Source: Chlorokybus atmophyticus
Lineage: Eukaryota; Plantae; Mesostigma and Chlorokybus algae
Assembly (NCBI GenBank): GCA_009103225.1
Contig: RHPI01002836.1
Coordinates: 124,001-188,000, forward strand
Direction of reading: 5' to 3'
Length of the DNA stretch: 64,000 nucleotides
Made by a program: the position numbers and the translations under genes. Of the stretch, positions 8,052 to 57,500 are shown one piece after another (position 1 is the stretch's first letter; each line of letters begins with the position of its first letter). The notes beneath the pieces were generated by a model. It searched no databases, was not told where the DNA came from, and saw only the letters and a program-made list of their open reading frames with translations.

Positions 8052-8278
8052 TGCCTGCTGCAAGCGTAATCCGTCTCTCAGCTCAAGCTCGTGGCGTGTC
8101 CGGGAGCCGTATCTCTCCCCTCCACAGCGTGACCGGCAGCTACGCTTGTGTGCTTGTTGTCTCCGTTTCTCCCCTTGGCATTCCACTGAACCATGCATGG
8201 CGGCGGCGGCGGCGGAGGAAGAGGAGGAGGAGGAGGAGGACGAGGCTGATCTCTCAAGGAGCAGGCCCATCATCAACC

Positions 8279-10818
8279 ATGGGTGAGTGGGTAGCGGGTA
8301 GAGCTGCTCGGCTGCTGGACGACATGGGCGTGCTGACTCGTGAGGACGGCAACGACGGCGTTTTGCGCAACTTCGCCGCTCAGCTTAGGCATGCGGCGGC
8401 TCTCCTCGAGCTATCCCTGGACCAACACACCAATGCCAGTGCTGATGGTAGCAGTAATCCCATGGACAATGCCGTCAGCGTGAGGGACATCGTCGCCTAC
8501 GCCCACAAAGTCAGCTACTCCTCCTACGCACCGATGGGGTATATGCCGGGACAGCCGATGAGGAGAGGGATGCCGCCGGCGCCGCAGGATGAACATATGA
8601 GAGCGTCGGCGCTGTACAATGCACCGGGTAAGGATGCCATGATCGCGTGGTTGAAGCTCAGCGCACGTTGTTTCACGATGCAATCGACCACAATGATCCA
8701 CAAGGCCTTCGTGCAATGCCCTGAGTTGTAACGCTCCAAGTTGGTGTCAGTGTTCGAGTTTTGCTGTAGCACATGGCGAATCCGTGGTTGTCCTGCAGGA
8801 ACGTGTGAGCATGTGAGTAGGTGTGTGCACGCTTGCTGGCGCGCATGTGCGCGCGTGCATGCATCTCATGCAACCGTCTGTGTGCTCAAGCACTCACATA
8901 TGTGTGCCTGCGTGCCTGCGCTTACGCATGAACATGTTCGTGGGCCGAGGTTTACATGTACGTGCATGTATGCGTTTTGTTTTTGGGGATTGCATACACG
9001 TTCATGTGGACGCTCTTGCTCGTGTATGCACATTGCGGGCGCACGCGCATGCGTATAAGTGCTATATGAGCATGCACGCCAACACATATGCGCATCCCCC
9101 NNNNNNNNNNNNNNNNNNNNNNNNNNNNNNNNNNNNNNNNNNNNNNNNNNNNNNNNNNNNNNNNNNNNNNNNNNNNNNNNNNNNNNNNNNNNNNNNNNNN
9201 NNNNNNNNNNNNNNNNNNNNNNNNNNNNNNNNNNNNNNNNNNNNNNNNNNNNNNNNNNNNNNNNNNNNNNNNNNNNNNNNNNNNNNNNNNNNNNNNNNNN
9301 NNNNNNNNNNNNNNNNNNNNNNNNNNNNNNNNNNNNNNNNNNNNNNNNNNNNNNNNNNNNNNNNNNNNNNNNNNNNNNNNNNNNNNNNNNNNNNNNNNNN
9401 NNNNNNNNNNNNNNNNNNNNNNNNNNNNNNNNNNNNNNNNNNNNNNNNNNNNNNNNNNNNNNNNNNNNNNNNNNNNNNNNNNNNNNNNNNNNNNNNNNNN
9501 NNNNNNNNNNNNNNNNNNNNNNNNNNNNNNNNNNNNNNNNNNNNNNNNNNNNNNNNNNNNNNNNNNNNNNCCCCCCCCCCCCCCGCTCATGCATCCATGC
9601 GTGCGTGTATTTATGCGCTCAAGTGCATGGTCATGCGCATGGGCGTGTGTGTGTTCGCATGCATGGGCCCATACTCGTCACCAAACGTTGTTTGGCACAC
9701 GCAGTCATCGTGACGAGGGCTGAGAAGAAGGCCAAAACCGCCGCCGCTGCCGCCGCTGCTGCAGCTACACTGCCCCCCACACCCGCATTGCCTCCCGTCA
9801 CGCCCGCAGCCCCACCAAGTACAGAACTATGTCAACAACACCGACTCATATCCAACCCATCAACCCATTGTCACCATGTTGTTGTGCGTTTGCAGGTCTG
9901 GAAGGTGCAGAGCGCCAGGGTGCAGGCGCGCCGATGCCGGCCATCATCCCGCCGATGCCCCACGGATGGAAGCCTGGCGATCCCCTCCCAGACTGTGAGT
10001 TGTTGCAGAGTTGGTTGTTCGTTGAGTTGTCCCGCTTGCAGCACACATGCAACTGTGTCAACACTTTTATGTCTGGCTATGCATACACGCACACTTGTGC
10101 AAAAGCAGTAAGTTCCCAGATGCACATGCGTGCATACGCCCATATGCACGTGCCCGCCCGCGCAAACGCGCTTACACGACTTGTGTGTTGGTTACAACGC
10201 AGTTGAGCTGCCGCCTATGCCGGAAGGTTGGAAGCCCGGCGACCCCGTCCCTCTTCCTGCTGTGCCGTTGGTCCCGCCGCCGACACTAGCCCATGTGTTG
10301 GCAGCGCCACCCGCCTCGCAGGACACGGGAGCAGCGCCCGGGCCAGAGTACGATGGTCGTGCTGTTGTTGCGTGTGTGGGTGGGTTGGGTTGTGGGAAGG
10401 GGGGCTGATGTGGTTGCGTGTGGGTGTGGTTCAGGATGATGGCGGGGCCGGTCACGGCGGCGGCGCCAGGAGGGCAGATGGTTGTGCCGTTTGTGCAGGT
10501 GACAGAGGCTGGGTTAGTGATTGCATGTGGAGTACATGTTGGAACTAACGCATGTGCACGCGTATGCATATTGCACGTGCACAAGCACACAACCACATGC
10601 ACGCACAGCAAAACACGCGCATGCGCACGAAGAGATTCGCACACACTCATCATCCGCGTGCGCGCGCGCGCACACACGCACGCATACACATGCGAGAGTG
10701 GCTTGGCCAACCTCTGTCGTTGCAGCTTGATCTCAACCCTGATCTGGAGGAGGAGTACGATGACGCCAGCATGTACAGCGACGAGAGTTACAGCGAGAGC
10801 GAAGACGAGGAGTCGTGA
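8279..10818 (+). CDS. MED4: Mediator complex subunit 4 (plant type); start uncertain, one intron spans an assembly gap
   Basis: Med4 motif VRDIVAYAHKVSYSSYAP...PPAPQDEHMRASALY. Two PPMPxGWKPGDP repeats and an acidic tail VQ/LDLNPDLEEEYDD...EDEES* match plant MED4 architecture. Confidence 0.88.
9101..9570. other. Assembly gap (N run)
   Basis: Run of n flanked by C homopolymers, inside a MED4 intron. Confidence 0.99.
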
Positions 10819-11871: not shown

Positions 11872-12953
11872 ATGACGATGCATGGCGGCGGCGGCGGTGG
11901 CGGCGGCGAAGGACCAGGCCGAGGAGGAGAGGGAGGAGGGGAGTGGGTTGTGGAGCGTTGGAGCGCCAAGGGGACGGCGGAGGCGGCGAAGGTGCTGGAG
12001 GAGGTGGCGGCGCTGGAGAAGCGCGTGAGTGACCGACCAGTGCACGTTTGTGTGAGGCATGGATTGTGCATGTTGATTCATGTCATGCAAGTAATGTAAT
12101 CAATATGTAATTAATATGTTCAGATGTGTTATCATTACCATCATTTGCGATAGCTTGTCATATCTACAATCATTGCGTAGTAGTGTGACGAATTGTTAAT
12201 GGGATCGTCATAGCATTGCTGATGATATCTCAATCGCTGTAATTATCACAGTAATAGTCGTCAACATTGGTGGATGATTTACGGTTGTTGTTGCATGAGA
12301 CCGCTGCAGTGTTTTGGTGTGTCGACTCATTGCAGACGCACGCTATAAACACAACCGAACACACATGCAGATTTTCCCGAAGCACGAGTCGATGCACACC
12401 CGCCTCGCATCCGAGCTGTCACACCGAAACACAACGCTGCTGTTCGTGCGCTCAAGACGACAAGGAGAACAACAGCAAGGAGAAGTTGTAGGCTATCTTG
12501 TTTACACCACTCAGTCCCTCCTCACCACCATCACAAAGCTAGCAGGTCAGACACGCATGCACACATGCACATATGAACACTGACAACGCACGCACGCACG
12601 CACGCACGCACGCATTCGCACGCGCGCGTGTGCCCAAACGCACACATACATACGAGTGCACGCATGGACGCATACACGCATGTAGAGACACACACGCACA
12701 CACGCACGCACACGCACAATGCACCCCCGTTCCCCTCTCAGTCCGTCCCGACCATCGTCGCCTCGGCATCGCCACCGCCCTCTTCCTCTCGATGAACAAC
12801 AAGCCGACCACCGCCGTCGCGCTGCACGTGGATGTGGAGAGGGGGGAGGCCGTCCGACTGTACCGCGCGTGGGGGTTCGAGGTGGAGGGGAGAAGGATTG
12901 AGGACTATTATGCGAAGGGGAGGGACGCGTATAGGATGGTGTTGGGCGGATGA
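11872..12953 (+). CDS. GNAT N-acetyltransferase, RimI/NAA-like, 3 exons
   Basis: Exons give VAALEKR/IFPKHES...VVGYLVY...ITKLA/VRPDHRRLGIATAL (acetyl-CoA motif A) ...ALHVDVERGEAVRLYRAWGFEVEGRRIEDYYAKGRDAYRM. Confidence 0.88.
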
Positions 12954-13706
12954 GATGAAGGGAGAGGGGAGGGAGATACGGTGAGGGGTTGTTGTGGTTG
13001 TTGTGGTTGGTGGTGGTGGTGTGCGCGTAGGTTGTATCCATACGGGTGTGCCATGGTCGAGTGTGCCTGAATTGCATGCGCGTATGGTTGGGTGCGTGCA
13101 CCTGTTACAACTGTACTGCACGCGCGCGTAACACGTGTCTGTTTGCTGCAGTCCATACACCCCACCGTTGCTATGCCTCTGGCACCCGCAAGGTGATGTT
13201 CACTCACCCCATACACCAAGTTGGACGTCTGCTGCAGCAGCAGGTGAGTCTCTCTCTCAGCTCCCAAACAAGAAGAACTGTAGGCTTGTTGGTGTGTTTT
13301 TCAAGGGCATGGGTGCTCGGCTGTGCTGGTTGCCTCACTTGGCTTTGACATCATCGTTGTTGTGCGGGCCCAGAGGGCACAGGAGACCGCAACGTTGTGC
13401 AACATCGTGCCTTTATTAGTAGAGACATGAAGACATGCACCATGTTAGTAGTAGCAGTAGCTGTAGCGTGTACTTGTAGTACTGGTTGTTGCTCTTATGA
13501 AGGTCGTGGCAGAGTGGTCCGAGCTGATAAGCTGATGGGAATGCATTGCGCGTGCGTGCGTGCGTGTTGGGGCCAAGACTACATTCGTACAACTGTACAT
13601 GGGTACGGTCATTGTGCTCAGTTTGCTTTGAGGCAAAGCTCACAGAGGTGTCTGATACTGCTGCTTACACGTACCCACAGTCACAGAAACGCACATGCAC
13701 ACCCAT

Positions 13707-15135
13707 ATGGCGGCGGTGGTGGTAGTGCGGGCGGCGTCCAAGTCCGTGGTCGGTGTCGTCGACCGCCCCCCGCTGCCTCGTCAGCGCGGCGTCGTTGTGG
13801 AGAAAGCGGGTGGAGCCAGACCCGCCGCAGCCACAAGAGGGTGCCATCTCTGTTGTGACTTGATTTTACTTTACTTCGTGCTTGTACAAGCATGTATGCC
13901 TCGAATGAGGTGGTTCAATACAACCATGCTAGAGCTTGAGACACATGCAGTACTCAGCACACACAGGCTGCACAAAACGAGCACCCTGCTAACGCATTGC
14001 GTGTTGCGTAGTTCAGGAATGTGGAAGAGGTGGTGTTGATCTGGGTGCGACGGCAGTACTCCACAGACATAGCTATGGAAGTCGCAGTCCCGTGTGACGG
14101 CTATATATTGCAGAGATATGCGCAAGTGCGGCAAGAGACGCTAATCAACAACGTTACAATCAAGCGGTCCTTAAGGTATGTATGAGTGGTTGTGTTGCAC
14201 ACCTCACTGCTGCAGCCAGTGTTGAGTCGTCTCTTACCTCGTGTGGTCTCAGGTGTACGATGATGAAGGAAGGAAGATGTTGACAGAAGGGACTGTTGAA
14301 AGTCTCCTTGAGAGAAGTCAGTGTAGATGAAAAACCGCAAGCAGTCTGAAGCTGCATAACATGTGTGCATGGTACAGTACACTATGACTGTGTGTTAAGG
14401 TCTTGGCTGTGAGCACCACCCGCTACTGGTCAGAGGCCCTGAGGAGTTGAGAACACTGGAGCTTATGCATACTTCAGGCGCTGTTCGCAAGTACAGTTCC
14501 CGTTCGCAAAGCCAGTTCGCTGCATGCCTCAATGCGACGGGCTATGTGGGGAATGAAGTGCCAGGCTTGGGAGTCACGCCCGACCTCATCGCTATCGCTA
14601 ACGATGTCAACAAAGTGCACGCGCTTGTGCCAGGAACTACAGAGCAACTTGCTGGTCTGACACGGACAGTCAATTTAGCGTACCGCCACGCATACTTTTC
14701 TATAGCTTGCACGATCTGACGCTTCGCTCCGAGGCTACAGTCATTGGCAAAGATGACATCTTGAATGTCAGGTTTGGGGTGGATGGGCAGGACGTTGCCA
14801 AGTTCCATGGTTTACTGCTGCTGGACATTGCCGAAGAGGTCCATCCGGCACTGGGCAAAGGATTTGTCCTCATGGTTAGCGACGAGGAGCGCAATGAGGG
14901 TTGGTACCTGGAGTTGTTGCGCTTCCTTTTGAGAGTTGAAGACTTGAAGAAGCAGCTGCGGTTACCTCCTTAACGGAGAGTATGGCCAATGATGTCAAGG
15001 CAGGTATGCAGTCTTGCTTAGCATCTTAAATTCATTGTTGCTTGCCAACATGCACACGCGTTATTCAGGATGCTCAGCCGCTCGAAGAAGTGGAGTTTGT
15101 CTTGAATGAAGCTGCGCGACTACAAGCGCGCATCG
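13707..15135 (+). pseudogene. Orphan chimeric gene or pseudogene: duplicated STR12-like first exon spliced to an unrecognised ORF
   Basis: Exon 13707-13840 resembles 17307-17493. It splices in frame to 14017-14175 and 14434 onward. There is a frame change near 14700 and an in-frame TAA at 14971-14973 before further GT-AG exons. No family recognised. Confidence 0.5.
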
Positions 15136-16152
15136 GTAAGTGTGTATACGAGGGCGTTGTTACTGTTACCAGCTGATGATTTGCATCTCATGTCTACAGA
15201 TTGTTACATCGTTAACAGTTTGCAATATGTGCAGTACTGTTCTTTGTTGCTGCGCGTCTGAGCAAGCAATGTATGAGTGTCCAGAGCTGAAATGGGAACT
15301 AGTTGCGGTCACGATTAATGGTAATCTGCGCTTATTGTAAGCATGACAGGTAAGACTACAAATTACTATGGCATGTGCGTTTTAGGCTTTCTTCCTATCT
15401 CCTCTCTTCACTTGGCGCCCGTCTCCCCTCCCCCTCTCGTGCTCTGTCTCTCCTCCCCCACCCCGCCCACACTACCGCTCTCTGTTTGCATTGGGGGGGT
15501 GCAAGAAGATGGCCGCAACTATTGATAGGAGTCCTGGTCATCGTGCATGCGCCGTTGCGGCTCTACCAAACCCTCTCCTCCACTATCCTTTCCCCTTGTC
15601 AAAAGTCCAATCCCCTTTTGCCAGTTAGTTGCGTTTGCCGTCGAGTTGGTCATAAAGACTTGCCGTAATGCATGTTATGTGCCGCTGATTGTACAAAAGT
15701 TATACGGCACTGTGTGTGTGCGCCCATCCATCATACATGCTGGCGCAAGCAATGTTGACATGCGCACTCTGTTGCTGCATTGGTTCACATGCATGCACAC
15801 CATCATCACATACACTAACACCATATCATCTACATCTACTATTGTCACACTATGTGTCTACTCTCCGTGAGCCAAGCTATGCATGCACAGCCCCCAACAA
15901 TGAGCAGTAGCTGCAATAGCTGTTGTATCGGCGATAGTGTGAATAGCCAGGCATGAGCGCTTGCTGTATGATGGCAGAATGTTTAAGAAAGGACTTGTTG
16001 ATGGTAAGAGTGGTGCGTGTGTTTTATGCGTTGTCTTTGTTGTGTACCCTTGTCGTGGGGAAATGTGATGGGGAAATCGTGGGTCATTGTAGTAGACACA
16101 TAGTATCCACGCGAGACTTAGCATTGCCGAGGGCTGCAGCATTGGGATTTTA

Positions 16153-16278
16153 AAGGCTTTGCTGTACAAATTCGAAGGGGTTAGTTACATGCCCTCATGA
16201 ATCAAGCAAGGCTTTGATGTACAGATTCAAAGGGTTGAGGTACATGCTTTCATAAATCAAGCAACTTTTGTTGTAGAA
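16153..16278. repeat. 55-bp minisatellite, 2 diverged copies plus a partial third
   Basis: aaggctttg(c/a)tgtaca(a/g)attc...tacatgc...aatcaagc at 16153-16207 and 16208-16262, with a partial unit after. Confidence 0.75.
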
Positions 16279-17306
16279 CTACGTTATCAACAATAAGCTC
16301 AACGCGTATGACTTTTAACCCTCATACTTTATAACCATCTGTAAATCAACTATCATACCTTATATATATAACAAAGTCAGCCACTCAAGTGAATGCAGAG
16401 TTTCGTGTCTAGCGCGCGAGCGCGAACTGGAGAGAGAGAGCGAGAGCTCCTCTGCCGTCCTATTGAACACGCAAGTGTTCGATTGTCATCATCTACCATG
16501 CCTATTAACACAAACCACGTACACCACGCGCACAAGCTCGTAACACTAGCACCAAATATCCAACACACACGGTACAGGATAAGCACGAGATTAAAAGCAT
16601 GCATTTCAATGCCATGCATGACTAGCAACACCGCACGCACCTCAATGCCGCATGCATGACCACCGGGCTAACTATGTACTACTCTACCTCTACTCCTACC
16701 GCCCCCCTTGTTAGTCATGCATGCATGCATCATTGGTGTCCTCCTCGATGCTCGTATATCCCGTGCACATTGTTTGTGCACCATGCCACCCAAGACAGAG
16801 AGGGAGAGAGCATGCTCGCATGTACTTTTCGTTTTTTGAGATTTAACATGAAGTGTATCAAACAGGCACAAGGCAGAGTTCAAGGAGTACAAAGAGTCCG
16901 TTTTACAGTGTCCCTATGACTAGCATATGCAAAAACAAAACACATGCAAGATTGTTAACGAAGCGAGGACAGAGAATTTCACAAATACGGTAGCAGCAGA
17001 GAAAGTAGAACTTCTACTCTCTCCGGCGGCAGAGGTGCGACAGGGAGTCAGGAGTGACGAGAGAAAAGCAGCTGGGGAAGGTAGGCTGCAAGAGAGCGAG
17101 TAGAGCTGATCCCCAGGAGGATAAGAGAGCCAGTGCTGTTGCCATGTGGCCATCATGCAGGACACACAAGACATGGAATCCTGAATGACTGCTCACAGCG
17201 TTGGGTGTCTGCTGATCGGGTCATACAGCCCACTCTGCAAATGCACACTTACTGGCATACCAGCTTTTGTACACCTACCCACAGTCACACCCACATGCAC
17301 ACCCAC

Positions 17307-17307
17307 A

Positions 17308-17344
<37 letters not shown>

Positions 17345-18872
17345 TGCACGGGCGGCGTCCAAGTCTATAGTCGGAGTCGTCGTCGGCCGCCGCCCTGTCC
17401 CTCGCCAGCGCAACGTTAGCGAAGTTCTGGAGCGAGCCAGACCCGCCGCTGCCGCCGCCGGCCGATTGCGGTATCAGGCTGTGCGGGGCCAAGGTGCGGC
17501 TGTCCTGGCCTGGCCTGGTGCATGCACTGTGGTTGTGTGGTCGTTTGCATGCATCCAGGCATCAATCCATTGGTTTTACAGAGCATGCAATCAACAATGC
17601 TGAAAAAACAACAGCAGCAGCAGCAGCAGCAGCAGCGTTGTGGTCGGCTTTGCTTGGTGCTTGCTTCAGTCAGCAGCCAGTGCGCTTTCGTTTTCAGTCA
17701 TAACAACGTGACTGATGAAACTTCTAGTGATGATGACGATGCTGAGGCTGATCACGATATTACAACTGTCTGTCCTCCTCGCCCTGTGGTTCGAGTCGAG
17801 TGTCCCATGCACTGTTGGGCATGAGATTCAAGCGCAACGCTTGTTGTTGTTGTTGTTGGTCTATATGTAATGTCGTTCGCAACTCCTGTATGTCCAGCCT
17901 CCTCCTCCTCCTCCTCCTCCTCTTCCCCCCGCCACCATCGCGAACTTCGCGTCCAGCACATCCTCGTGGACCCCTCCGACTCGGACCTCCTCGACTCGCT
18001 TCACACCCGCATAGCAGGTAAAGGAATGCCACCAACACAACACGACACAACACAATACAATACAATACAACATCACGGCTGTGGTTGTTGAGTGATGTTT
18101 GTTGTGGTGTGGTGTAGGTGGCGAGGATATGGGGGAGCTTGCCGAAGAGTACTCAAAGTGCCCGTCGAGGAAAAAAGGAGGGGATATCGGGTGGATACAG
18201 TGGAACCAGACGGTGAGTGGGTGCGAGGGGCATGCATCCACGTGTGTGCGTGTGCGTGTGCGTGTGCCCAGATGCACTCGAGCACATGCTTGCATCTGCG
18301 TGTACGTGCGCCAGTGTCTGTATGCACACAGTCTTCACAGATGTGGCTGCATGTGTACCCGTTTGCCCACGTTGACACGTGTATGTGTGAGGTACAGTCG
18401 CTACAACTCCCCATTCACTTTAATAGACTGTTGTGTCGTTCAGATGAAGGAGTTCCAGGACGCGGCGTGGGCCACGCGCGTTGGCCAGCTGTCACGCGTG
18501 ACCTCAAAGCACGGCGTGCACTTACTGCGTGTAAACAACGAGAGGTGAAGGAAGTTCCTCAACACGACATGTTGTCTCGTCACAACAGACAAGCCTGACT
18601 GCTTCATTGTCAACAGGGAGCCTCTTGTCGTGGGCGTGATGCAGGTGGAGGAGCTCGCGTCCGTGCTGGACGACGAAGGCAACGATGGTGGGGACAGGCA
18701 GCTCATTGACGTGCGGGAACCAGACGAAGTGTACGTGTGTGCCGGATGTAGTCAGTATTGACATGTGTGGGCGTGTGTGTGGATGGGGTGGGGGGGTGGG
18801 GGTGGGGAGGCGTGTCTGCGCGTGCGTGCATGTGCATGTACAAGTTCGTGTTTGTGCGTGCGCGTGTTAACG

Positions 18873-18912
<40 letters not shown>

Positions 18913-19352
18913 CAGAGCGATAGCCAGTCTGCCGGGTTTCAGCATCCTCCCGTTAAGCCGATTTTCAGAGTGGGCGCCGCGGATATCGAGTGACCTCGAT
19001 CCCAACAAAGAGACCCTTGTGCTGGTATGAGAAGGGATCCCAAATGCATTAGCATGCTACATGTGTTGCTTCCATAACTCTGGCCTCACATCACGCATGT
19101 TGTGCTTGCCACATACAGTGCCATCACGGCGTGCGATCCCTTCAAGCAGCCAACTTTTTGCTGTCTCAGGTACGTTGCATGCATGCATTACCACACACGT
19201 TTGGGACATTGTCTCTATGTGTCACTCGTTTGCCACTTTGTTCACATCATGTGCATACGCTTGTCATGCAGGGCTTCACCAACGTAAAGAACGTTGAGGG
19301 AGGCATACACGCGTACTCCACGCGAGTGAATTCCTCCGTGCCGGTCTATTAG
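17307..19352 (+). CDS. STR12: PpiC (parvulin) plus rhodanese domain protein with transit-peptide-like first exon
   Basis: Exon 1 (17307-17493, Ala/Arg/Ser-rich) splices in phase 1 to 17898. It is followed by parvulin ELRVQHILV...LAEEYSKCPSRKKGGDIGW...EFQDAAW...SKHGVHLL and rhodanese QLIDVREPDE...LVL/CHHGVRSLQAANFL...GFTNVKNVEGGIHAYS...VPVY*. Confidence 0.9.
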
Positions 19353-19735
19353 GCACGGGGTTAGCCTGCCACTTGTACATAGGTGTAACAGATGATGCTG
19401 GTCAGTCAGACTGATAGACAGCCTGACTGACCAGCATCATCTGTTACACAGAATTCATCGTGTGACGGTGTGGAGCACACAAACAAGTTAGTGTAAGGCA
19501 GTAGCAAGCCAACAACCAGCAGCGGTTGGGCGCTGGCAAGCACGTTATCACTTTGCTTGTATTGCTGTCCTAATAGCACACTCTTCAAGACACAACAACA
19601 CCCACTGGTTGAAGTAGCAGTTCCAGTGTCTCCCACCTCAACCCACTCAACTCAACAACATTCCGACAACAGCATCCCCTCAGCAATGTGCCTTGTAACT
19701 ATCCCACACCCCAACCCAACCATCACCTCCTCTAC

Positions 19736-22700
19736 CTAACCCCCCTCTCCCTCTCCCTCCTCCAGCGGCTCCGTCGGCTCCACCGCCTTATTGAGGCACA
19801 CAATCCTCTTCCCCGCCCTCGGCGGCCGGCACGCGTATTGCGCTGCGTTGACGTGCGCGAGGTGGTCGCCTGCGTGGTGGTGGTGGCCGTCGTGGGACTT
19901 GTTGTCGTGCGAGGAGACGGCGTGGCCGCGGGCCAGGAAGCGAGCGGCGGCGCGGGCAACACCGGGATCTGGGGAAGACAATGTGTGGGTGTGGGTGTGA
20001 GTGTGCACACGTGTGTCCACGCACATGCTCGTGTACGGGTGCACGCGTGCGCGCACATGTGTGTGGTACTTAGGAACAATGATGTTCCATATGCAGCCAT
20101 CTCATCAAGAGTATACCAACAGTAAAGCTGTCGCACCTTGGGGTGGGTGCCAGTTATTGAGTACGGCGAGTGCCGCAAAATGTTTTCTCAATAGTTGCGG
20201 TAGCGTCGGTCCCGTCTCTCCATCCACGAGGACCTTGCATCCCTTCAGCACGTCGTAGCCGTCGCGGCCCTCCAGCAAATACTCCTTTGTGGCAACCCTG
20301 AGTGATGGACAGTCAGTGCATGAGCGTTGATGTTGGGTTGAGATGCAGGATAACCTTACTTGTATGTTCGCGTGAGATCGATGGGTGCATTGTTGACGAG
20401 CACGGAGTCGCGAAGGAGACGGGAACCGGGAGGCTTCGCTGCGTCGAAGGTGAGAGCGATGCCGGACACCTGATCATGACAGGATGTGACAGGTAGCGGA
20501 TGATGTTGGGATGCTTGATTAACTGATGTTGGACGTACTTGGTGTATGCAGCGAGTGATGCAACCACATGTACGCGTGCAAACCCATAGGCGTACACAAC
20601 ACCGATGCACGCACGCTTGCGCACATGCTCGTGCACACGCGTGCGCACACGCGCAGTTTCGTGCTTAAACATGCGCATAGCCATGCACACAAACACATGC
20701 GCGCATACCTGAGGAAAGCGGCCTTCGAGGCGTGGGTATTGGCTGACCCCGTTTTCGAGTGCCTCCAGCAGCTGCTCCCCGCTCATCTCAACCAGCACCA
20801 CGACATCCTAACACACACTCAACACACATCATTGCGTGAAACATCTGTGAGTATGTGTCATGACAATCCTTGACAAACTGTACTAGTATATCGGTATGCG
20901 TTGGGTACGTGACCATGCGGGTGGTGTACCATTGATTAATCAGCCATACACGCGCATGCGCATACGTGACTTTGCGAGTGATCTCATTTTGTACAACTAC
21001 TTTTACAACAACCATCATGACAGCACAGTGTGACGTCATGTTGCGCGCGTGCACACGCACACACACACAGACACTTCCCTACCATCATCGGCAGCAGCGC
21101 CAGCAAATCCCTCCCCGTCACCGCTCCCGGCCCGTGCACCGCGTCGGACCTGAACGTCCCGCTGTTGAACAGCGCGCAGTCCGCTGCGCCGCAGATCCCC
21201 TCGCGGGCGATGTCGCAGACGAGGGAGCCGGCGTTGGTCTCGCGGAGACGGATGGAGGCGAACCTGGGTGGGGGAGGGTGATGTTGGGGTGGGTGCAGGT
21301 GGGGTTCAAGGTGGGGGTTGATTGCAGTAGTATGGGGGGGTTGGGCGTAAAGACGTGTATGGTGGTATGTGTACATGTACGTGTTGATGTTGTGTCGTAT
21401 GCAAGCAGATATATGCTCACGCATACAAGCACACGTGCGTGCACATGCACACACGCATGTTGTACACAGAAGCAGTGTCTTCGAGTACAACAATTCCGCT
21501 GAAGATACCGACATATGCAAGTGCGTCTGTCGACATGTGTATGTGCTTGCCTTGCATCCAACCCAACAGCAACAATGCCCACAGGCTCATCGAGCTGCCT
21601 TCCCATCGCATCCAAAAACCCATCCACAACCTCCTTGATCTGCAAAGAAACACACGCATCACTACCATCACCACCACATCAAACACCCTCCCACCCCTCC
21701 CCCACTCACTTGCGGGTCTTCTGGTACAGCCTTTGTGACTTCCACCCTCTCGTGCGTGACAGAGAAGCGCCCTTTGCTGTGGTTGCCGTTGCCATTGATG
21801 TTGTTGGTGGGTGCGTCGGTGTTGTGGGTGCGTCGCAAGCGTAGGACAGTGAACTCGCGGAAATCGGTGCCGGACTTGACGATCAACGCATTGTTGACCT
21901 GAGACACAGATTGTGATAAAAAGACTGGTTAAGATCTTGTGCATGCGTGTGCATGCACGTGCGCACACGCGTGTGCTTGCGCGTGTACGTGTGTACATGC
22001 TGGTGATGTGCATATGTGTCCGTGCACACGCAGAAATCCACCCACCCACCATACATAACAGCACTCTCACCGTGCGCGTGGAGTAGTGGTGGTCGTGTCC
22101 GCCGAGCACGAGGTCGATGAGGTCGCCTGCCTCGCGCGCCAGCCGCTCGTCGTTGTTGTCGCGCATGTGGGTCAGAGCTATCACCACGTCCGCGCCCTCA
22201 TCTGAACGCAGCGCCTCCGCCAACCTGGCAATGACATGATGATGATGGTGACAGTGATGATGACAGTGATGATGGTGTTGGTGACACTCGCAATGGTGCA
22301 GTTTTGTTGAGAGCAATGTCCTTTGAAAACACAACAGGGAACGTATGTGTGCGAGTACATGTCCGTGTGCGTTCGTGCGAGCGCACAAGCATGCTATGAC
22401 TAGCAGAAAAAACTCCCTTCATTTAACACTTGTGCGGCGTCAATAACCAGCCAAGCGATGCATGATCAGCAGCATGTACACACAGCCTGACTCTCACTTG
22501 CAAGCGTGAGATGCATGTGATCAGTGAAACTCCACTCAACAGCCCAACGCACCGTCTCCCCTCGGTGACAAAGTCCACGTAGGCGAGGTCCTCGGGTTCC
22601 ACTGCCCCGAGGGTGTCGAGCCACTCGCGCTCCACCAGCCCGATCAACCCAACACGCCAACCACGCCACTGCACGTGTGTGTGTGTGTGTGTACTTGTGA

Positions 22701-24629: not shown

Positions 24630-27057
24630 TCAATCCGTGAGCTTGAGTACGCCCTTTTCCATGAGCGCCAACGCACACTGATGATTATGACTTTCAGCTC
24701 CAAAGTTCCCAGCCCGCAGCGGCTTCCTCGCATCATTTCCATACTCTAATCTCTCCAAACAATCTTTGAGCAATATCCTCTTATATCCGTTCGCTTGCAG
24801 GTGCGTGGAGATGATAATATCATCCGTGAAAAAACACGCGGGGCTGATATCCTTTGGGTTGCGGAATATGGTTTGGTCATCGAACATACCGCGACGATAA
24901 GCGACGCCAACATAGGCTTCTAACACCTCGGCCTCAACCTTGTCGGGACGCCAATGGACCCAACCGGCAGAGTCGATACCGAGCGAGGAGAAGGCGTACA
25001 CCTGGTTGGGGGGATGAGATGGTGGGTGGGGTGGGGATGGGGGGTTGGGTATTGTGGGGATGGGGGAGTGGGATGTACCTGCTTGGAGTTCCATATGGAG
25101 TAGGCGACGAGCGTGGCGACGAGGTGCTCATGGTAGTAGTAATCATCATCCACCTGCATGTCACACCACGACTGATTCAAGACACACATACGCACGCACA
25201 CAGGTCTCCACAAACAACAAGCACAGGCACACGCGCACACACACACACACGTGCACAACATCCTCCACTCCCTTACCGTGATGATGATGGTCTCCGGATC
25301 CGTCTCCATCTCCAGCGCCGGCAGCAGTTTCGTCGCCGGTCCCCTGTCGTCTTGCGCGCTGTCGAGCAGCACGCGCGCTGGACTCGGCAGAGCCCTCAAC
25401 CATGGGGGGTCCGGGTAAGCCCTTCCCGTTCTCGACGACACCTGATGTTGGTTGGTTGGTTGATCACACATTGTTCACTTGCACAACTGCGCGAATTGTT
25501 GGGTTGTAGTGACGTGGTATGGCGCTCACCCTGGGGAGGAAGATGTAAATCGCATCGGGGAGAAGAGACTGCTGCAGGATGGACATCACAGTGGGACACA
25601 TGTACTCGACCCTGTGCGACACACACAAACAAAACAACATCAACTTCAGCCCACTTGTTAGCAGTGCAGACAACAGGGTCACATGAACTCGACAAAACGG
25701 CACTCGCATGCACACGCGCATGCACGCACGCTCACAACCACTTCGTGACTCCCCCCACCCCCCCCACCCCCCATCCCCCCCACACACACCCCACCTGTCG
25801 GGTGTTGTCGTCATGGACACGACGACCCTCGGCCTCAGGTCCCTCGCGATCGGTATGGGTTTGCGCGCTCCGCAGTGGTCGAGGGCGTCGAGCCCGCGAG
25901 TGGCCAGCTCGCCCGGGGCGTCGTCCTTGCGCGTGCGAGAGGAGGGGAGGCGGCAGGAGGAGACGTAGGAGCGGAGGGCGGAGGGGAGGGAGCCGGAGAC
26001 TGGGGGGGAGAGTGTGAGTGGATGCGTCGTGTGTGAGAGTGTGCGTCCACACACGCGCATGCGTCCACGTACGCACACCTCGCACCGCGGAAGCACACGC
26101 GCGCGAATGGGGGAGCGTCCACACGCATGGACACACGCACACGCACAGGCACAGGCACGTGCGCACACGTCAACCCCGCAATGCATGTGTGGGTACCTTT
26201 CAGTGCCTGACGGTCTGAGAGGTGCGTCTTGAGGGCGTTTGCCAGCGGCGAGGAGGGGTTGTTCTGCTGACCTGATACACTGTTGCCCTCGTCATCAATG
26301 TGGTTGTTGTTGTTGTTGCTCGCAACTGCGGTTTGAAGAACGTCGCGTGCTGCCGCCGCAGCAGCGTCGCTGATGAGCTGCAGAAGGGAAAGCAACATGT
26401 CAGTCACGCATGCACGTACCCACATGTATGTGTGCATGTATCGGTGTCTACAGCACCACCACTGTTGTGCACATAACAGGCGCGCGCGCGCGCACACATC
26501 GAGCGCACTCTTGCGTGCACGCACGCGAACACGCATGCCACACGACCCATGCCCGTGTCAACACTCACACGCACGCCCGCACATACCACATGACGCACGC
26601 ACGCCAACCCACACTCATCNNNNNNNNNNNNNNNNNNNNNNNNNNNNNNNNNNNNNNNNNNNNNNNNNNNNNNNNNNNNNNNNNNNNNNNNNNNNNNNNN
26701 NNNNNNNNNNNNNNNNNNNNNNNNNNNNNNNNNNNNNNNNNNNNNNNNNNNNNNNNNNNNNNNNNNNNNNNNNNNNNNNNNNNNNNNNNNNNNNNNNNNN
26801 NNNNNNNNNNNNNNNNNNNNNNNNNNNNNNNNNNNNNNNNNNNNNNNNNNNNNNNNNNNNNNNNNNNNNNNNNNTCTCCCCACCTTCTTGACCTCCTCCT
26901 TGTCTAGTCTCCCCGCCCCTTCCAGCAACGCCCCCTGCAGCCTCAGCCGCCGCGCCTGCCAGTCCAGAGACGACGACAATGACGCGTCGGTGCCGAGGGA
27001 GGAGAGGGTCCCCGTCGAGGGGGACCACAACAGGATGAAGAGGGCGTACAGGAGGGC
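24630..27057 (-). CDS. GT-A fold glycosyltransferase-like protein with N-terminal membrane anchor; first exon unresolved
   Basis: Hydrophobic ALLYALFILLW exon, then RVVVSMTTTPDR, DDRGPATKLLPAL, IIIT/VDDDYYY (DXD-type), EAYVGVAYRRGMF, CFFTDDIIISTHLQANG. Stop TGA at 24630. Spans a gap. Confidence 0.75.
26620..26874. other. Assembly gap (N run)
   Basis: Run of n inside the glycosyltransferase-like gene. Confidence 0.99.
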
Positions 27058-32334: not shown

Positions 32335-32585
32335 NNNNNNNNNNNNNNNNNNNNNNNNNNNNNNNNNNNNNNNNNNNNNNNNNNNNNNNNNNNNNNNNNN
32401 NNNNNNNNNNNNNNNNNNNNNNNNNNNNNNNNNNNNNNNNNNNNNNNNNNNNNNNNNNNNNNNNNNNNNNNNNNNNNNNNNNNNNNNNNNNNNNNNNNNN
32501 NNNNNNNNNNNNNNNNNNNNNNNNNNNNNNNNNNNNNNNNNNNNNNNNNNNNNNNNNNNNNNNNNNNNNNNNNNNNNNNNNNNNN
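32335..32585. other. Assembly gap (N run)
   Basis: Run of n flanked on both sides by C homopolymers. Confidence 0.99.
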
Positions 32586-47622: not shown

Positions 47623-47977
47623 GTTGCATTTGGTGTGCAAATACAATTTCCATTAGAAGAGTTTGTTTCCCCCCCCCCCCCTCCCCTTTGTGTATGTTGG
47701 CATTTTAGCACCAATATGTAACTATCACTTCACAACAGCTTACAATAAACGAAAGAGCGTCTGCCCTGAGGCTTGTACAACAATGGGACACACTGCCTAT
47801 ACAAATGTACATAGGTGCAGTCATAGCGTGCGCATCATAGCACTATGTTTGATAGCCGAGCGTCTCCATGATGCGCATGCAAGCAGCATCTTGCGCAAGC
47901 ACTGCTAGTGCGCGTTTGGCTTCAGCTGAATCCCGGACTGCCATCGCTGTGAGAGACTTCATGGGAGCAAGGGATGA
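47623..47977 (-). pseudogene. Remnant paralog of the 3' end of the U-box/ARM gene
   Basis: Aligns by eye with ~57778-58144. Shared stretches include tctgccctgagg, tatacaaatgtacat, atagccgagcgtctccatga and tcttgcgcaagcactgc...agtgcgcgtttggcttcagct. Confidence 0.8.
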
Positions 47978-49823: not shown

Positions 49824-49947
49824 GGGTTTGCTTGCGCTGCGTGTGCAGCACTGCGCAGGGTGCTGAGCGCAACCGTCTTGATAACGCGCTGTGAGGCCTG
49901 AGAGTGTACATGTGCTCACCGTATTTGCTACGGCGTGCCCCAAGCCG
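49824..49947. repeat. ~125-bp diverged direct repeat, copy 1 (copy 2 at 54422-54547)
   Basis: gtttgcttgcgctgcgtgtgcagcactgcgcagg...taacgcgctgtgaggcctgagag...acggcgtgccccaagc matches the sequence just right of the Harbinger element. Confidence 0.85.
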
Positions 49948-50010
49948 TCTTCCCCTTCCACAACTTACTCTCTAACCCACCTCCACTCGCACACCTTCAC
50001 ACACCACTAA

Positions 50011-50217: not shown

Positions 50218-52473
50218 ATGGCGGGAGCAATTAGGTTTGTAGGGTTTAAGGCCGCAGCCAGGGAAGCACACGGCTGTGGCAGCGGCGGCGGTGGAGGCGG
50301 AGGAGAAGGTGGTGGCGGCGCTGGAGTAGCGCTGGTCACCATTCTCTTGCCTACCGTACAGGTATGAACCATGAACAGAGGCTTTTAGCTGCAGTAGCGG
50401 TAATGCTGGTGATGTTGGTGAGGGCGTCGCTGCACCTGCAGTATGTGCACAGTTGCTTGCCCTAATGCCCTAGTTGCTTGTGGTGCACAAGATGGACGGC
50501 TATGTGCAACCCAACTTGAGCACGCCATTGCAGCCTTCAAGCGAGTACTACAATGGCTTTGTTAGTCAAGGTAAGTAAATACAAGCGATAATGTTGTGCA
50601 TTATGCTTGCATGCGTGCCATGCTGTTTGTGCATTTACTGGGTGTGTGTTCTGCTTGTTAAGCACGTGTGTATGTGAGCAGGGCAGGGCGATAGCCAAGG
50701 TAGTGACTACCAGCAGCAATTCCATCACCAACAATCAACGCAAAGGCAGCAACATGATAAGTGATCTGTTGCTGTTAACGATGTTGTCCAGTTTGCTTGC
50801 ATGCATGTCTGTGCATTCACGTGTGTTCTGCTTGTTCGTTTGCTTGTTCATGTGTGTGTGTGAGCAGGACTTTTTGATAGCCAAGGTACTGACTACCAGC
50901 AGCAATTTCATCAGCAACAACCAACGCAACATCATCAACCAGGTAACTGGTTTGTGGCCATTAACGCCCATGTGCAGATTGCTTGCATGCGTATCATGCT
51001 GTTTTGCATTCACAACAGTTGCGTTCTGCTTGTTAATCATGTGTATGTGCGAGCAGGTCATTGCAATAGCCAAAGCACTGACAACCAGCAACAACCAGCG
51101 CAACATCAGCAACAACATGACCCTCAGCAGCAGCCACCTTGTGTGCAAATGCCTGGCGCACAACCAAGGATGGCTCCACAGCAGCTACCACCAGTTGAAG
51201 TTCCCATACACCTGCGCCCCAAAAAAGCTCTTCGCTGGTCCCCAGAACTCCTGGCAGAAAATAGTAAGTGTAATGGGTGTTGCTTGAAGGTGCAGACCGT
51301 GCAACACTGTCATTAACGAACCATATGCAGTAATTAAAGAGAGGAAGCGTACGCTTGAGGCAGCGAAGGCAGCCAAAAAGGCCGGGATTGGAGGGGGGGG
51401 GGGGGGGGGGGGGGGGNNNNNNNNNNNNNNNNNNNNNNNNNNNNNNNNNNGGGGGGGGGGGGGGGGTTGATGCTAAGCCAACACGATGCAGAGACCCCGA
51501 GTGGAGTGCTGAGGAGACATTATGCTTGATTGATGCATGGAACGCCATGGATGCAAAGACTCTAGAGGGTGACATCTACCTGCAAACCAAGTCGCAGCCT
51601 CAGAAGTGGATGGAGGTGCTCGCCATGTGTAAAGAACAGGACGTATGGGTGCAGACTCTACCACAATGCAAGAACAGGTGTGTGCGTGTGTGTCTGCATG
51701 ATATACATGTTGCTGATGCTAAGACACTCTGCAGCTCATACACACGCGCACACATGCAGCATGTGTGCGGAGGCAAGCAGGACATGCATGCAACTAGATG
51801 CGTGCACACAAGTTTGATGTGACATCTACTTAGCAAACCGCCCACACAGCATTCAGCTCGTCAATCAGCACGCGCACACACAGCTGATCAGCCCTTCGTT
51901 CTAACACAGGTGGAAGGCAATCAAGGCCCAGTTCAACGAGGTTCGTGACTTCATCACTTCCAGCGGCAATAAGGATTATTTCCGAATGACAGCTGAAGAG
52001 AAAAAGGCAGCTAACATGAAGCCCCAATTGTTATTGAATTGTGCCGCATTGTATGACGCCATGTGGAATGGGCAGAAGAATTCCCATGCGGCAGACCCTA
52101 CGCAGTACTCATGGGATTCGTCAAGCCCTATACTAGATGCAGGTGCACATGTTATGCATAATACATTTGTGTATGGGCATTGGCGTTGTGTGTGTTCAAC
52201 ATAGCTGAGTAGGCTGTTGCAGACTCGGATAAAACACCAGCATCGGACAAGTCAAGCGGACGCAAGCGTAAAGGTGCGGATGCGTCAGATGCGGTGGTCA
52301 CAGCATTTAACTACACCGCCATGCTCATGGACCTAGAACGCGATCGCTTGTGGTCGCAGCAAGCTATGTTCAAAGAGGAGATGGAGTTCACGCGTGAACT
52401 CTCTAGGGACAGCAATGCAACATTAGAAAGATCCATTGCACTATTAGCAGCAGTCATGCGCCCATCCACCTAG
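50218..52473 (+). CDS. Harbinger Myb/SANT (trihelix-like) DNA-binding protein with Gln-rich N-terminus
   Basis: EWSAEETLCLIDAW...QKWMEVLAMC...QCKNR/WKAIKAQFNEVRDF...DYFRMTAEEKKAANMKP, then a coiled-coil-like C-terminal exon ending TAG at 52471-52473. Start is 50218 or 50492. The frame across the 51417-51450 gap cannot be verified. Confidence 0.82.
51417..51450. other. Assembly gap (N run) within a poly-G tract
   Basis: Run of n flanked by G homopolymers. Confidence 0.99.
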
Positions 52474-54421: not shown

Positions 54422-54547
54422 GGGTTTGTTGCTTGCGATGCGTGTGCAGCACCGCGCAGGAGGCTGAGCGCAGCCGTTTCGTAACGCGCTGTGAGGCCTA
54501 AGAGCGTGCGTATGCTCACTGTAGTTGCAACGGCGTGCCCTAAGCTG
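54422..54547. repeat. ~125-bp diverged direct repeat, copy 2
   Basis: Homologous to 49824-49947; begins immediately after the right TSD. Confidence 0.85.
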
Positions 54548-57500
54548 CCATCCACTCTTCAATCGTACCTTCCGTTCTATAGCTCGCGTGCCCTATTAGC
54601 CCTAGCTGCCCGACCCTGCCCCGCCTTGCCTTGCCTCGCCACCTGAATTGCGCAGTCTCTCTTAGCACAAAGCTTATATGTGTGGTCCGTTGAGCTCGTG
54701 TTTGAAGGTTGGTTGTAGCGGGTTGTGCATAGGAGCAAGCATTTGGTGTCAAGTTTCTTTGGCTCATGTGCGTAGATCATTGTAGCAGTTTGTGAGTTGA
54801 TTGTGCGGATCTCACTGCAGAGCCTTACTGTGCAGCTCTTGGGATTAGTCGTAACTACTTGCATGCACTGACACTAATGAGGTGTAAAGCGCGGTGTTTT
54901 CTTAAAACCCTCTACTGTACAAGAGACCGTATGCTAGATTAGCAGCATGCAGGTGTATAACATACACAATGCCAGCACAACATGCCGCACTCAGCACATG
55001 GTATCTCATGCTTATACTCTACACCAGCAGTTCACCACCAGGCTAGCTACTCCAACCAACACATGATGGATTAGAGATTGATGTACACCAAGCCCCTACG
55101 CCGTTGGTCAGACCCACATGCATGTCTAGCAATCACCTGCGCATGCGCATTTGGTCAGCGGCCAGCATCTTCACAACCGTGGACTTTTCCTCCCCCGTCT
55201 CCATCGCCTCTGCCGCCGCCGTCCGTCTGGTGAGCACCCTGCCGCAACCTCCATCGCTGTGCAATGGAGTTGCGCCTATTGGCGCGCAGCATGCATGCTG
55301 ACGCACTGCATGCATCACTCCCTTGTCTGTGGCGCAGCTTGTGCAGTCGCGGTCGTTGTTATGTCAAATTGTCAATGTGCTTGGATGCAATGCATGCACT
55401 TAACATACATATTTTGCCTGCACTGCATGCTATCGCATGTACTGTCGCACTTAATGTGTTATCGTATTAGCAAAGGGACACGCGCAGGGACACCGCGAAC
55501 GTTTACCCTCAAAGTCCGGGTTGCTACTTCACCCACTTGCGGCCACAGTGTACAGTTGCCCAACGGCAGCTGGCTCACTGTGGTGCTTTGCGTAGGTGAG
55601 GAGCTGCTGCTGTGGTTGCTGCCTTGCCGTGTTTTAAGTGCTGCTGTGGGTCCAGCGCACTACTGCTACCATACTTGATGGTTGCTATTGTCGTACCCAC
55701 GATGACTTGTGCTGATGCATCTACTGCTGCTGCTGTACTTGCTGCTTGCTGCTGTCGCATCAACGCTAACTGGTGCTGCTTGTTGCATTTAGTGCTGTAT
55801 GTCGTACTAACGCTAACTTGTGCTGCGTGTTGCACCTACCGCCGCTACTATACTTGCTGGTTGCTGCTGGCGTATTCAATGATTGCCTTTAAGGCAAGTT
55901 GCCCTAATGCCAACTTGTCTACTGTGCACTGACCACCAATACGATTGCTACGCTTGCTTGCATAGCATTGTGCTTGTGCATTCACAATCACCGCATTGTT
56001 TTCTAAAGCAGTGACTTTGTGGATAAAAGTTGCCGGTTGCAATATGTAAACAAGTGCTCATACAGCAAGCAAACAATCTTCTCAACTGACTAGCTTATTC
56101 ACTCCATTGGCATGTAGATATGCACGATTGCCTCTTGTATCTCTCAATCACACTTGCATTAAACAGTGGCAGCTAAGCAATGGATAATAAAGACAGTTAT
56201 CGAGTTTATTCAGTTGTGGCGAACTTGCACATACACATACTCCAGCATAAAAGAGTAAAAGTCATCGCATCTGACATTCATGACAGTTACATTATTTGTT
56301 CACACACAAAAACCGAAATTAAACGTACAGCTTAATACGTTAAAACCATAATAACAACACTTGACATGCATACAATCCATTAGCTTTATTTGAAGGGATC
56401 ATCCATGCATTTTCACAGAAAACTAGGTGTTAGTGTATGAGCTAGACTGTAGGCAGTATTCGGCGACAATTACGGTATTTATTCAAGTACACTTTATACC
56501 TTTAAGTATTCACGAACAACCACATTGCCTATTGAGTAACAACTTTCACGGCATTTGTCGAGGATATGCAGCTTTTCGCAGCAGGAATCGTACAACCCCA
56601 ACAAGCATTATTTACCACGTATTCACTGACGTTGTTGTTGAATATGCATATGATCCCGCGCTGAATGTTCAGGAATTGGGCGGATAAACGATTACCGGTG
56701 CTATGGGGCCGCGTCAACGCCGCTATCAACATGCTCAACAAGTACTTGAGGGCCGCCAATGGCATACCGGATTCACAGTGCTTTGTTATCCTCTTGCGCA
56801 TCCATGAGCTTTTCATTTGCGAGGTACATCATGTATCGTACATGCCGTTCATCAGTGCGTTCAACTCGCTTTGCAAAATGTGCTGTGAGTCACGTCGTGT
56901 AGCTCACCATGACAGTGACTCAAATGCATGTGGTGTGCTAATATGCAATAGCTTAACATCATTGTGCTGGGACAACGCGTCGTGGCATTGGACGACCCGA
57001 ATGGCGGTGGCAACGGCAATTGCCACGTCAATCTACTGGTAGGGTGCGTAAGAAGCGGGCTCAACCTGTGCAAATAGCCACACATATCTGCTTGTAGGGT
57101 AAGAGTGTAGTCGGCATGTATTGACCTGTGTTAGCTTCCTCTTTAACGCGCGTGTTTATTGCGAATGTTGCTGGCTTTGGGCATCAGAACCTTGCTCTCG
57201 CAATACCTCAACATTGACGACGTACACTTGTGGCAGCGGGAAGAAGACTTCCGCAGCCGCCTGAAACTAATGTAGCCATTGAGCCCTGATACCTGGCCAG
57301 GCACAGTGTGCACCAAATATTTCCAAGTTGTAGAAGCACCAACACACAGACCCTTAAGTGAGAAAGATTACCTGCGTCTCATGCTATGTTAACACTTGCG
57401 TTCTTGCATCTTCTCCCAGCCATCCTTCAAACTTGCGGAGTGCATGATACTCAAAGAGTGACTCACCACCATCAACTCAGTCCGCGCTGCCCCCCGGCAT

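Follow-up and report, generated by a model that had tools for sequence, protein, structure and literature searches.

A short segment of an STR12-like gene of the putative parvulin-rhodanese type, comprising the end of its leader, the start codon and part of the presequence, occurs a second time further upstream in the genome of the alga Chlorokybus atmophyticus, and this additional copy lies on the coding strand in the 5' region of an orphan gene, Chrsp109S01448. The DNA analysed is a stretch of 64,000 nucleotides (contig RHPI01002836.1 of assembly GCA_009103225.1, positions 124,001 to 188,000 of the forward strand), which is called the window below and is numbered from its first letter. Judging from the sequence, the most likely reading, plausible though tentative, is that Chrsp109S01448 uses the upstream copy (copy A), or did so until recently, as its first coding exon, be it the real or an alternative one. 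The more far-reaching proposal that this orphan Chlorokybus gene became organelle-targeted by capturing from its downstream neighbor the start codon together with the presequence, through a local duplication of 170 bp, appears rather unlikely when taken as a whole. It is conceivable that about 170 bp of the STR12-like gene were duplicated locally to a place upstream of it and that copy A came to serve as first coding exon of Chrsp109S01448, whereby a basic Ala/Val/Ser/Arg-rich putative organelle-targeting presequence would have been placed on a protein unrelated to STR12; transcription of this exon would then start from DNA outside the duplicated unit.

Extent and origin of the duplicated segment

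Within the window blastn pairs positions 13666–13832 (copy A) with 17270–17453 (copy B) on the same strand, with 68% identity over 192 columns and E values of 3e-16 to 4e-16 in two runs, one of which used a low-complexity filter. Local alignment of the two copies yields a score of 58 against 10.5 ± 1.7 for shuffled sequences (z = 28.6). A preliminary description, made from the letters alone, had recognized that leader and first exon are homologous to a second copy and had aligned the two peptides, an alignment that the translations reproduce; the limits given there (13630–13840 and 17230–17493) were too wide. Flanks of 400 nt around the copies are without similarity (z = -0.2 upstream and 1.0 downstream in local alignments against shuffles), and a comparison of 17150–20300 with 12900–17150 by blastn at word size 7 and by tblastx detected no similarity outside the common piece, in agreement with the earlier statement that the sequence following copy A has no resemblance to STR12. 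The acquisition of a promoter, which had been suggested at the same time, is not supported by these data, as the shared DNA upstream of the ATG amounts to 41 nt only. Since promoter-scale DNA is not shared, any transcription of copy A would have to come from uncopied DNA.

The duplicated unit of about 170 bp consists of a leader of 41 nt in copy A (13666–13706, plus strand) and of 37 nt in copy B (17270–17306), the ATG and about 42 presequence codons. The leaders are identical in 34 of 37 aligned bases and differ in addition by one 4-nt indel, and the context of the start codon, CACCCA[T/C]ATGGCGGCGG, is kept in both copies. Each copy has at its 5' end the sequence ...TACCCACAG/TCAC, a pyrimidine-rich motif resembling a 3' splice site, and on account of this motif a non-coding leader exon might precede the "first" coding exon in either gene or in both. 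The candidate first coding exon of copy A (exon 1A; 13707–13840, plus strand) comprises the ATG, 44 codons and 2 nt and is homologous to STR12 exon 1 up to position 13832. The homology stops 40 nt before the exon-1 donor of the STR12-like gene (17493/17494). A candidate donor for exon 1A, AGG/GTGCCA in phase 2, is found at 13840/13841, 8 nt beyond the end of the homology, and two further, weaker donors in the vicinity, CGG/GTGGAG at 13809/13810 and GTT/GTGACT at 13854/13855, are in phase 1. The GC content of exon 1A by codon position (0.82/0.60/0.73) is identical in the STR12 copy. By the composition of its translation, the peptide is rich in Ala and Val and contains 8 Arg/Lys versus 2 Asp/Glu in 45 residues, which fits an organelle-targeting presequence.

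The two copies are 3.6 kb apart and co-oriented, with copy A upstream of the STR12-like gene and no assembly gap near either of them. Assembly gaps (runs of N) are present in the window at 9101–9570, 26620–26874, 32335–32585 and 51417–51450; a 97-copy repeat family ("D1") proposed by a repeat finder is an artefact of the gap at 9101–9570. Between 32001 and 36000, a region that partly flanks an assembly gap, the G+C content falls to 0.37–0.42 as compared to about 0.50–0.55 elsewhere.

Copy B constitutes the 5' end of the STR12-like gene, its leader and exon 1 spanning 17270–17493 on the plus strand, with the homology to copy A ending at 17453. Exon 1 itself (17307–17493; 187 nt, phase 1) joins in frame to exon 2 (17898–18017), the start of the parvulin part, as had been claimed before, and the remainder of the gene extends from 17898 to approximately 19350 (plus strand), its later exons containing a Rotamase domain and rhodanese-like motifs. 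The ORF 18099–18545 matches Rotamase in Pfam (PF00639, 8.8e-10; PF13616, 1.5e-7), and the parvulin part matches the PDB parvulins Par10, Pin1 and PrsA. The rhodanese-like motifs IDVREPDE, GMRS...AA..L and GGI.AY were recognized by visual inspection of the ORFs of this gene; Pfam and PDB, searched exon by exon with exons of 30–45 amino acids each, returned no match to a rhodanese domain. STR12 of Arabidopsis, the namesake of the presumed donor gene and a protein with a parvulin domain and a C-terminal rhodanese domain, is a plastid protein.

How did the second copy arise? The duplicated unit is a small local DNA duplication. That it might be a multicopy transposable element present at many unrelated loci had been considered in the preliminary description; this idea was rejected because terminal inverted repeats are absent and because only two copies exist in the window. 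Within the 64-kb window, copies A and B are the sole copies, all remaining blastn matches being (GCG)n runs, and neither terminal nor flanking inverted repeats of note, nor other marks of a transposon, accompany them. A tandem duplicate of the whole gene or a pseudogene of STR12 was likewise rejected, as blastn and tblastx detect no further STR12 exons or introns near copy A and the flanks are unrelated. The STR12-like gene would be the donor, the sole ground for this direction of transfer being that the recipient is an orphan. Other repeats of the window are dispersed direct repeats of 80–90% identity (47759–47962 versus 57915–58120, 10.2 kb apart, and 49828–49956 versus 54429–54556, 4.6 kb apart), which are probably transposon-related, and three tandem units of about 186–189 nt at 50627–51094 that are 67–78% identical.

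The orphan gene and its annotated start

Chrsp109S01448 is an orphan gene. A full HMMER scan of 1.84 billion representatives with the ORF 14707–14970 returned one real match, the 256-residue protein of Chrsp109S01448 (E 1e-36; EukProt EP00898 Chlorokybus atmophyticus, JGI Chlat1), and otherwise two repetitive, evidently unrelated proteins. The annotated exons on the plus strand are 12910–12980, 13152–13243, 14114–14175, 14253–14316, 14400–14679 and 14772–14973, and all introns are GT-AG. The last four exons form the body of the gene (14114–14973, stop codon TAA at 14971–14973), which is single-copy in the window and lies between copies A and B. No homologue was found among 5.8 billion clusters, where a word search matched the protein itself only, no relative in the JGI metagenomes, and no usable match in the ESM Atlas for the last exon or for residues 77–256. 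Moreover, the protein contains no Pfam domain and hence neither a Rotamase nor a rhodanese domain, ten ORFs on both strands between 14021 and 16656 had no Pfam match, and a PDB sequence search with the translations of 14018–14176 and 14707–14970 found none either. An AlphaFold2 model of the protein computed without alignment reached a mean pLDDT of 33 and was useless for a fold search.

Copy A is located inside the annotated intron 2 of this gene (13244–14113), and the public model skips it. The annotated 5' end is not credible because the ATG at 12910 overlaps a coding exon of the upstream gene out of frame and because the first two exons are not coding-like. The upstream gene encodes a GNAT acetyltransferase (ORF 12573–12950 with Pfam GNAT matches, stop codon 12951–12953); a word search with its last coding exon gave no match. 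The doubtful 5' exons (12910–12980 and 13152–13243, together spanning 12910–13243 on the plus strand) begin with an ATG inside this GNAT exon, in another frame. Their GC contents by codon position are 0.54/0.62/0.61 and 0.65/0.67/0.42; reliable exons show a low GC content at the second position, as for example the last exon of Chrsp109S01448 with 0.68/0.27/0.66. The first two annotated exons are probably mis-predicted and the third possibly is, and the first 54–75 residues of the protein are probably not real. Between 12954 and 14017 the list of ORFs shows no better candidate for a start exon. Elsewhere in the window, long ORFs contain a Mediator subunit Med4 domain (8096–8728, plus strand; PF10018, E 3e-6) and armadillo repeats (59290–60216, minus strand; PF00514/ARMC5-like).

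The Chlorokybus gene models were produced with MAKER from ab initio predictions, homology and transcripts, and transcripts support 9,066 of 9,300 coding sequences (PMC7027972). On account of this proportion Chrsp109S01448 is probably expressed; its 5' exons are not validated thereby. At the other end of the gene, a strong donor, CAG/GTATGC, is found at 15003/15004 downstream of the stop codon, and about 100 nt past the stop codon the segment 15069–15135 (plus strand) is exon-like, with a strong acceptor (ttattcag/G), a strong donor (CG/GTAAGT), an open frame and coding-like periodicity. The orphan gene may extend further 3', or spliced 3' UTR exons may exist.

Splice paths, selection and the possible roles of copy A

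In the preliminary description exon 1A was spliced from 13840 to an exon starting at 14017 (14017–14175, plus strand; acceptor ...tagttcag/G, strong donor AAG/GTATGT at 14175/14176). Exon 1A, ending in phase 2, joins this exon in frame, and copy A is situated 177 nt ahead of it. The open frame is bounded by TAG at 14009–14011 and TGA at 14183–14185, and the acceptor at 14016/14017 opens a 57-codon frame starting right there. In this frame positions 14018–14113 have a GC content by codon position of 0.59/0.31/0.66, and their periodicity ranks within the top 1.9% of window positions; among positions scoring that high 72% are open frames versus 38% overall. The coding score used is simply the GC content by codon position; a codon-usage classifier trained on ORFs of the window was dropped, its training ORFs being contaminated by antisense and CA-repeat ORFs. 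The sequence from 14017 onward has the appearance of coding DNA, and a mistake is possible in the annotated acceptor at 14113/14114, the frame of the annotated exon 14114–14175 being different from the one opened at 14017.

The in-frame junction and the coding-like exon thus stand, and the chain that was to follow does not: continued through the donor at 14175/14176 (phase 2) to the annotated exon at 14253, it is terminated at codon 108. Three alternative candidate chains on the plus strand are open from the ATG at 13707 to the annotated stop. One leads over 13840/14017 and 14179/14253 by way of a weaker donor (TAT/GTATGA) and would encode 280 amino acids; a second over 13840/14017 and 14125/14253, using a donor (CAA/GTGCGG) that resembles the exon-1 donor of STR12, would give 262 amino acids; and a third over 13809/14114 and 14175/14253 follows the annotated frame and would yield 236 amino acids. 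These spliced models were checked for frame and stops only. As many as 147 in-frame GT-AG paths with one bridging exon lead away from copy A, and because such combinations are so numerous their in-frame status is weak evidence when taken alone.

At the protein level, the exon 1A peptide in proteins of 63–200 amino acids had no match in the database of 5.8 billion clusters even at E ≤ 1, and alternative versions of the orphan protein (141–448 amino acids) retrieved only Chrsp109S01448 itself from the same database, both being weak negatives. A scan of metagenomes with the leader-ATG motif gave 0 matches.

Has copy A been under selection? Among 41 aligned codons of the two copies 21 are identical, 7 differ by synonymous changes only, including the six synonymous pairs that had been listed before, and 13 differ non-synonymously, which corresponds to a dS of 0.40, a dN of 0.24 and a dN/dS of 0.59. 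Over the three codon positions the differences are distributed 8/9/12 (p = 0.64). Neither the dN/dS value nor this pattern differs from neutrality. The length differences in the coding part (21, 3 and 3 nt) are all multiples of three and the indel in the leader is 4 nt long; two of the coding indels fall within (GCG)n and (GTC)n repeats, where slippage by three occurs whether or not selection acts. The leader is identical at 34 of 37 positions (92%) compared to 94 of 123 (76%) in the coding part (Fisher p = 0.058). The leader diverges less than synonymous sites, a hint that both leaders are constrained. In simulations of neutral decay the ATG and a stop-free frame survived in 23–50% of trials, and in this GC-rich piece another frame on the plus strand and two on the minus strand are likewise open. 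Taken together, the selection tests modestly favor a function and do not prove it. The evidence for the earlier view that both copies stayed coding after the duplication is weak, given the dN/dS value, the even spread over codon positions and the frequent survival under neutrality.

For recruitment of copy A by the orphan gene speak the kept ATG with its context, the three open chains, the donor 8 nt past the homology, the coding-like frame opened at 14017, the absence of a better start exon upstream of it and the lack of credibility of the annotated start. Against it speak the MAKER model that skips copy A, the blank protein searches, the neutral-like tests, the stop at codon 108 and the fact that the orphan gene is unsupported beyond its annotation.

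Copy A could instead be an inert relic, that is, a templated or filler-type duplication in intergenic or 5'-intronic DNA without function, in which ATG and frame persist owing to a high GC content and a divergence that is only moderate. We regard this as a serious, if somewhat doubtful, possibility. It agrees with the annotated model splicing over copy A, with the missing protein matches to the exon 1A peptide or to alternative orphan versions, with selection tests that are indistinguishable from neutrality and with the additional open frames. In addition, copy A lacks the exon-1 donor of STR12 as well as promoter-scale DNA, and in-frame splice paths are easily found. Against a relic speak the leader with 3 mismatches in 37 positions, better kept than synonymous sites at a dS of about 0.4, and the coding indels that are all in frame. 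The strand on which copy A lies, which is that of the gene, its distance of 177 nt to a coding-like exon of compatible phase, and the absence of a credible start of its own in the neighboring Chrsp109S01448 also speak against it.

A different use, which we consider improbable, would be that of an internal or alternative leader exon, with transcription starting at the annotated exons 12910–12980 and 13152–13243 or nearby. The motif ...TACCCACAG/TCAC would in this case be an acceptor, and a cassette exon 13681–13809 or 13681–13840 would provide the start codon in some isoforms only. Both copies have kept the acceptor-like motif at their 5' ends, and 13681–13809 is a symmetric exon of 129 nt that fits in frame between the annotated exons 2 and 3, both of phase 1. 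The annotated introns 12981–13151 and 13244–14113 also have strong GT...AG sites. On the other hand, the upstream exons of the annotation may stem from ab initio prediction alone, and the motif may merely belong to the CA-rich leader.

That copy A is an alternative first exon of STR12 itself, mutually exclusive with exon 1 of copy B and spliced over about 4 kb to 17898, is very improbable: the phase-1 donors at 13809/13810 and 13854/13855 would suit exon 2, but the best donor (13840/13841) is in phase 2 whereas STR12 exon 1 is in phase 1, and the intron would hold another gene on the same strand in a neighborhood where introns measure 76–870 nt.

Comparison with known presequence transfers

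The acquisition of presequences by duplication or exon shuffling from a gene for an organelle protein is well established. In Populus and further Malpighiales, the nuclear gene rpl32 received the presequence of chloroplast Cu-Zn SOD (Ueda 2007 and Cusack & Wolfe 2007, as cited in PMC8018952), a case that is backed by transcripts and GFP data (PMC8018952). Shuffling of a presequence between cytochrome c1 and GapC is another example (Long 1996, as cited in PMC7456531). Presequence acquisition is reviewed more generally in PMC7456531, which also discusses alternative start sites and first exons and whose survey found no alternative-first-exon candidates.

If copy A was recruited by Chrsp109S01448, the gene that gave a targeting peptide and the gene that received it would still be neighbors, at a distance of 3.6 kb and with two breakpoints that can be read, and an orphan protein would be seen gaining an organelle address, caught in the act in a deep-branching streptophyte alga. 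Presequences could then spread by way of very small DNA duplications, and the transfer of a promoter would be unnecessary. Use of copy A would also correct the faulty public model of Chrsp109S01448; if it is not used, copy A is an ordinary gene-fragment relic.

With the SOD–rpl32 and cytochrome c1/GapC cases the Chlorokybus arrangement shares a 5' presequence segment that is common to two genes with unrelated mature parts, as well as a presumed nuclear donor gene and the confinement of the shared piece to the N-terminal exon. It differs from them in that the presumed recipient is an orphan instead of a gene of organellar origin, in that donor and recipient are direct neighbors, and in that the duplicated piece ends inside an exon and therefore requires a new donor site. 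Moreover, the Chlorokybus case is known from genomic sequence, SOD–RPL32 from transcripts and GFP data. Two homologous ATG-bearing exons arranged in tandem on one strand are also found where alternative or duplicated first exons change the targeting of a protein; here, however, the phase of the best copy A donor does not match STR12 exon 2, and the two exons are separated by another gene. Finally, gene-fragment relics resemble copy A in being local and in their size of about 170 bp, in a 3' breakpoint that ignores the exon boundary and in the absence of transposon hallmarks, whereas copy A has kept its ATG, its frame and a well-conserved leader and is followed directly, in the correct orientation, by sequence that looks coding.
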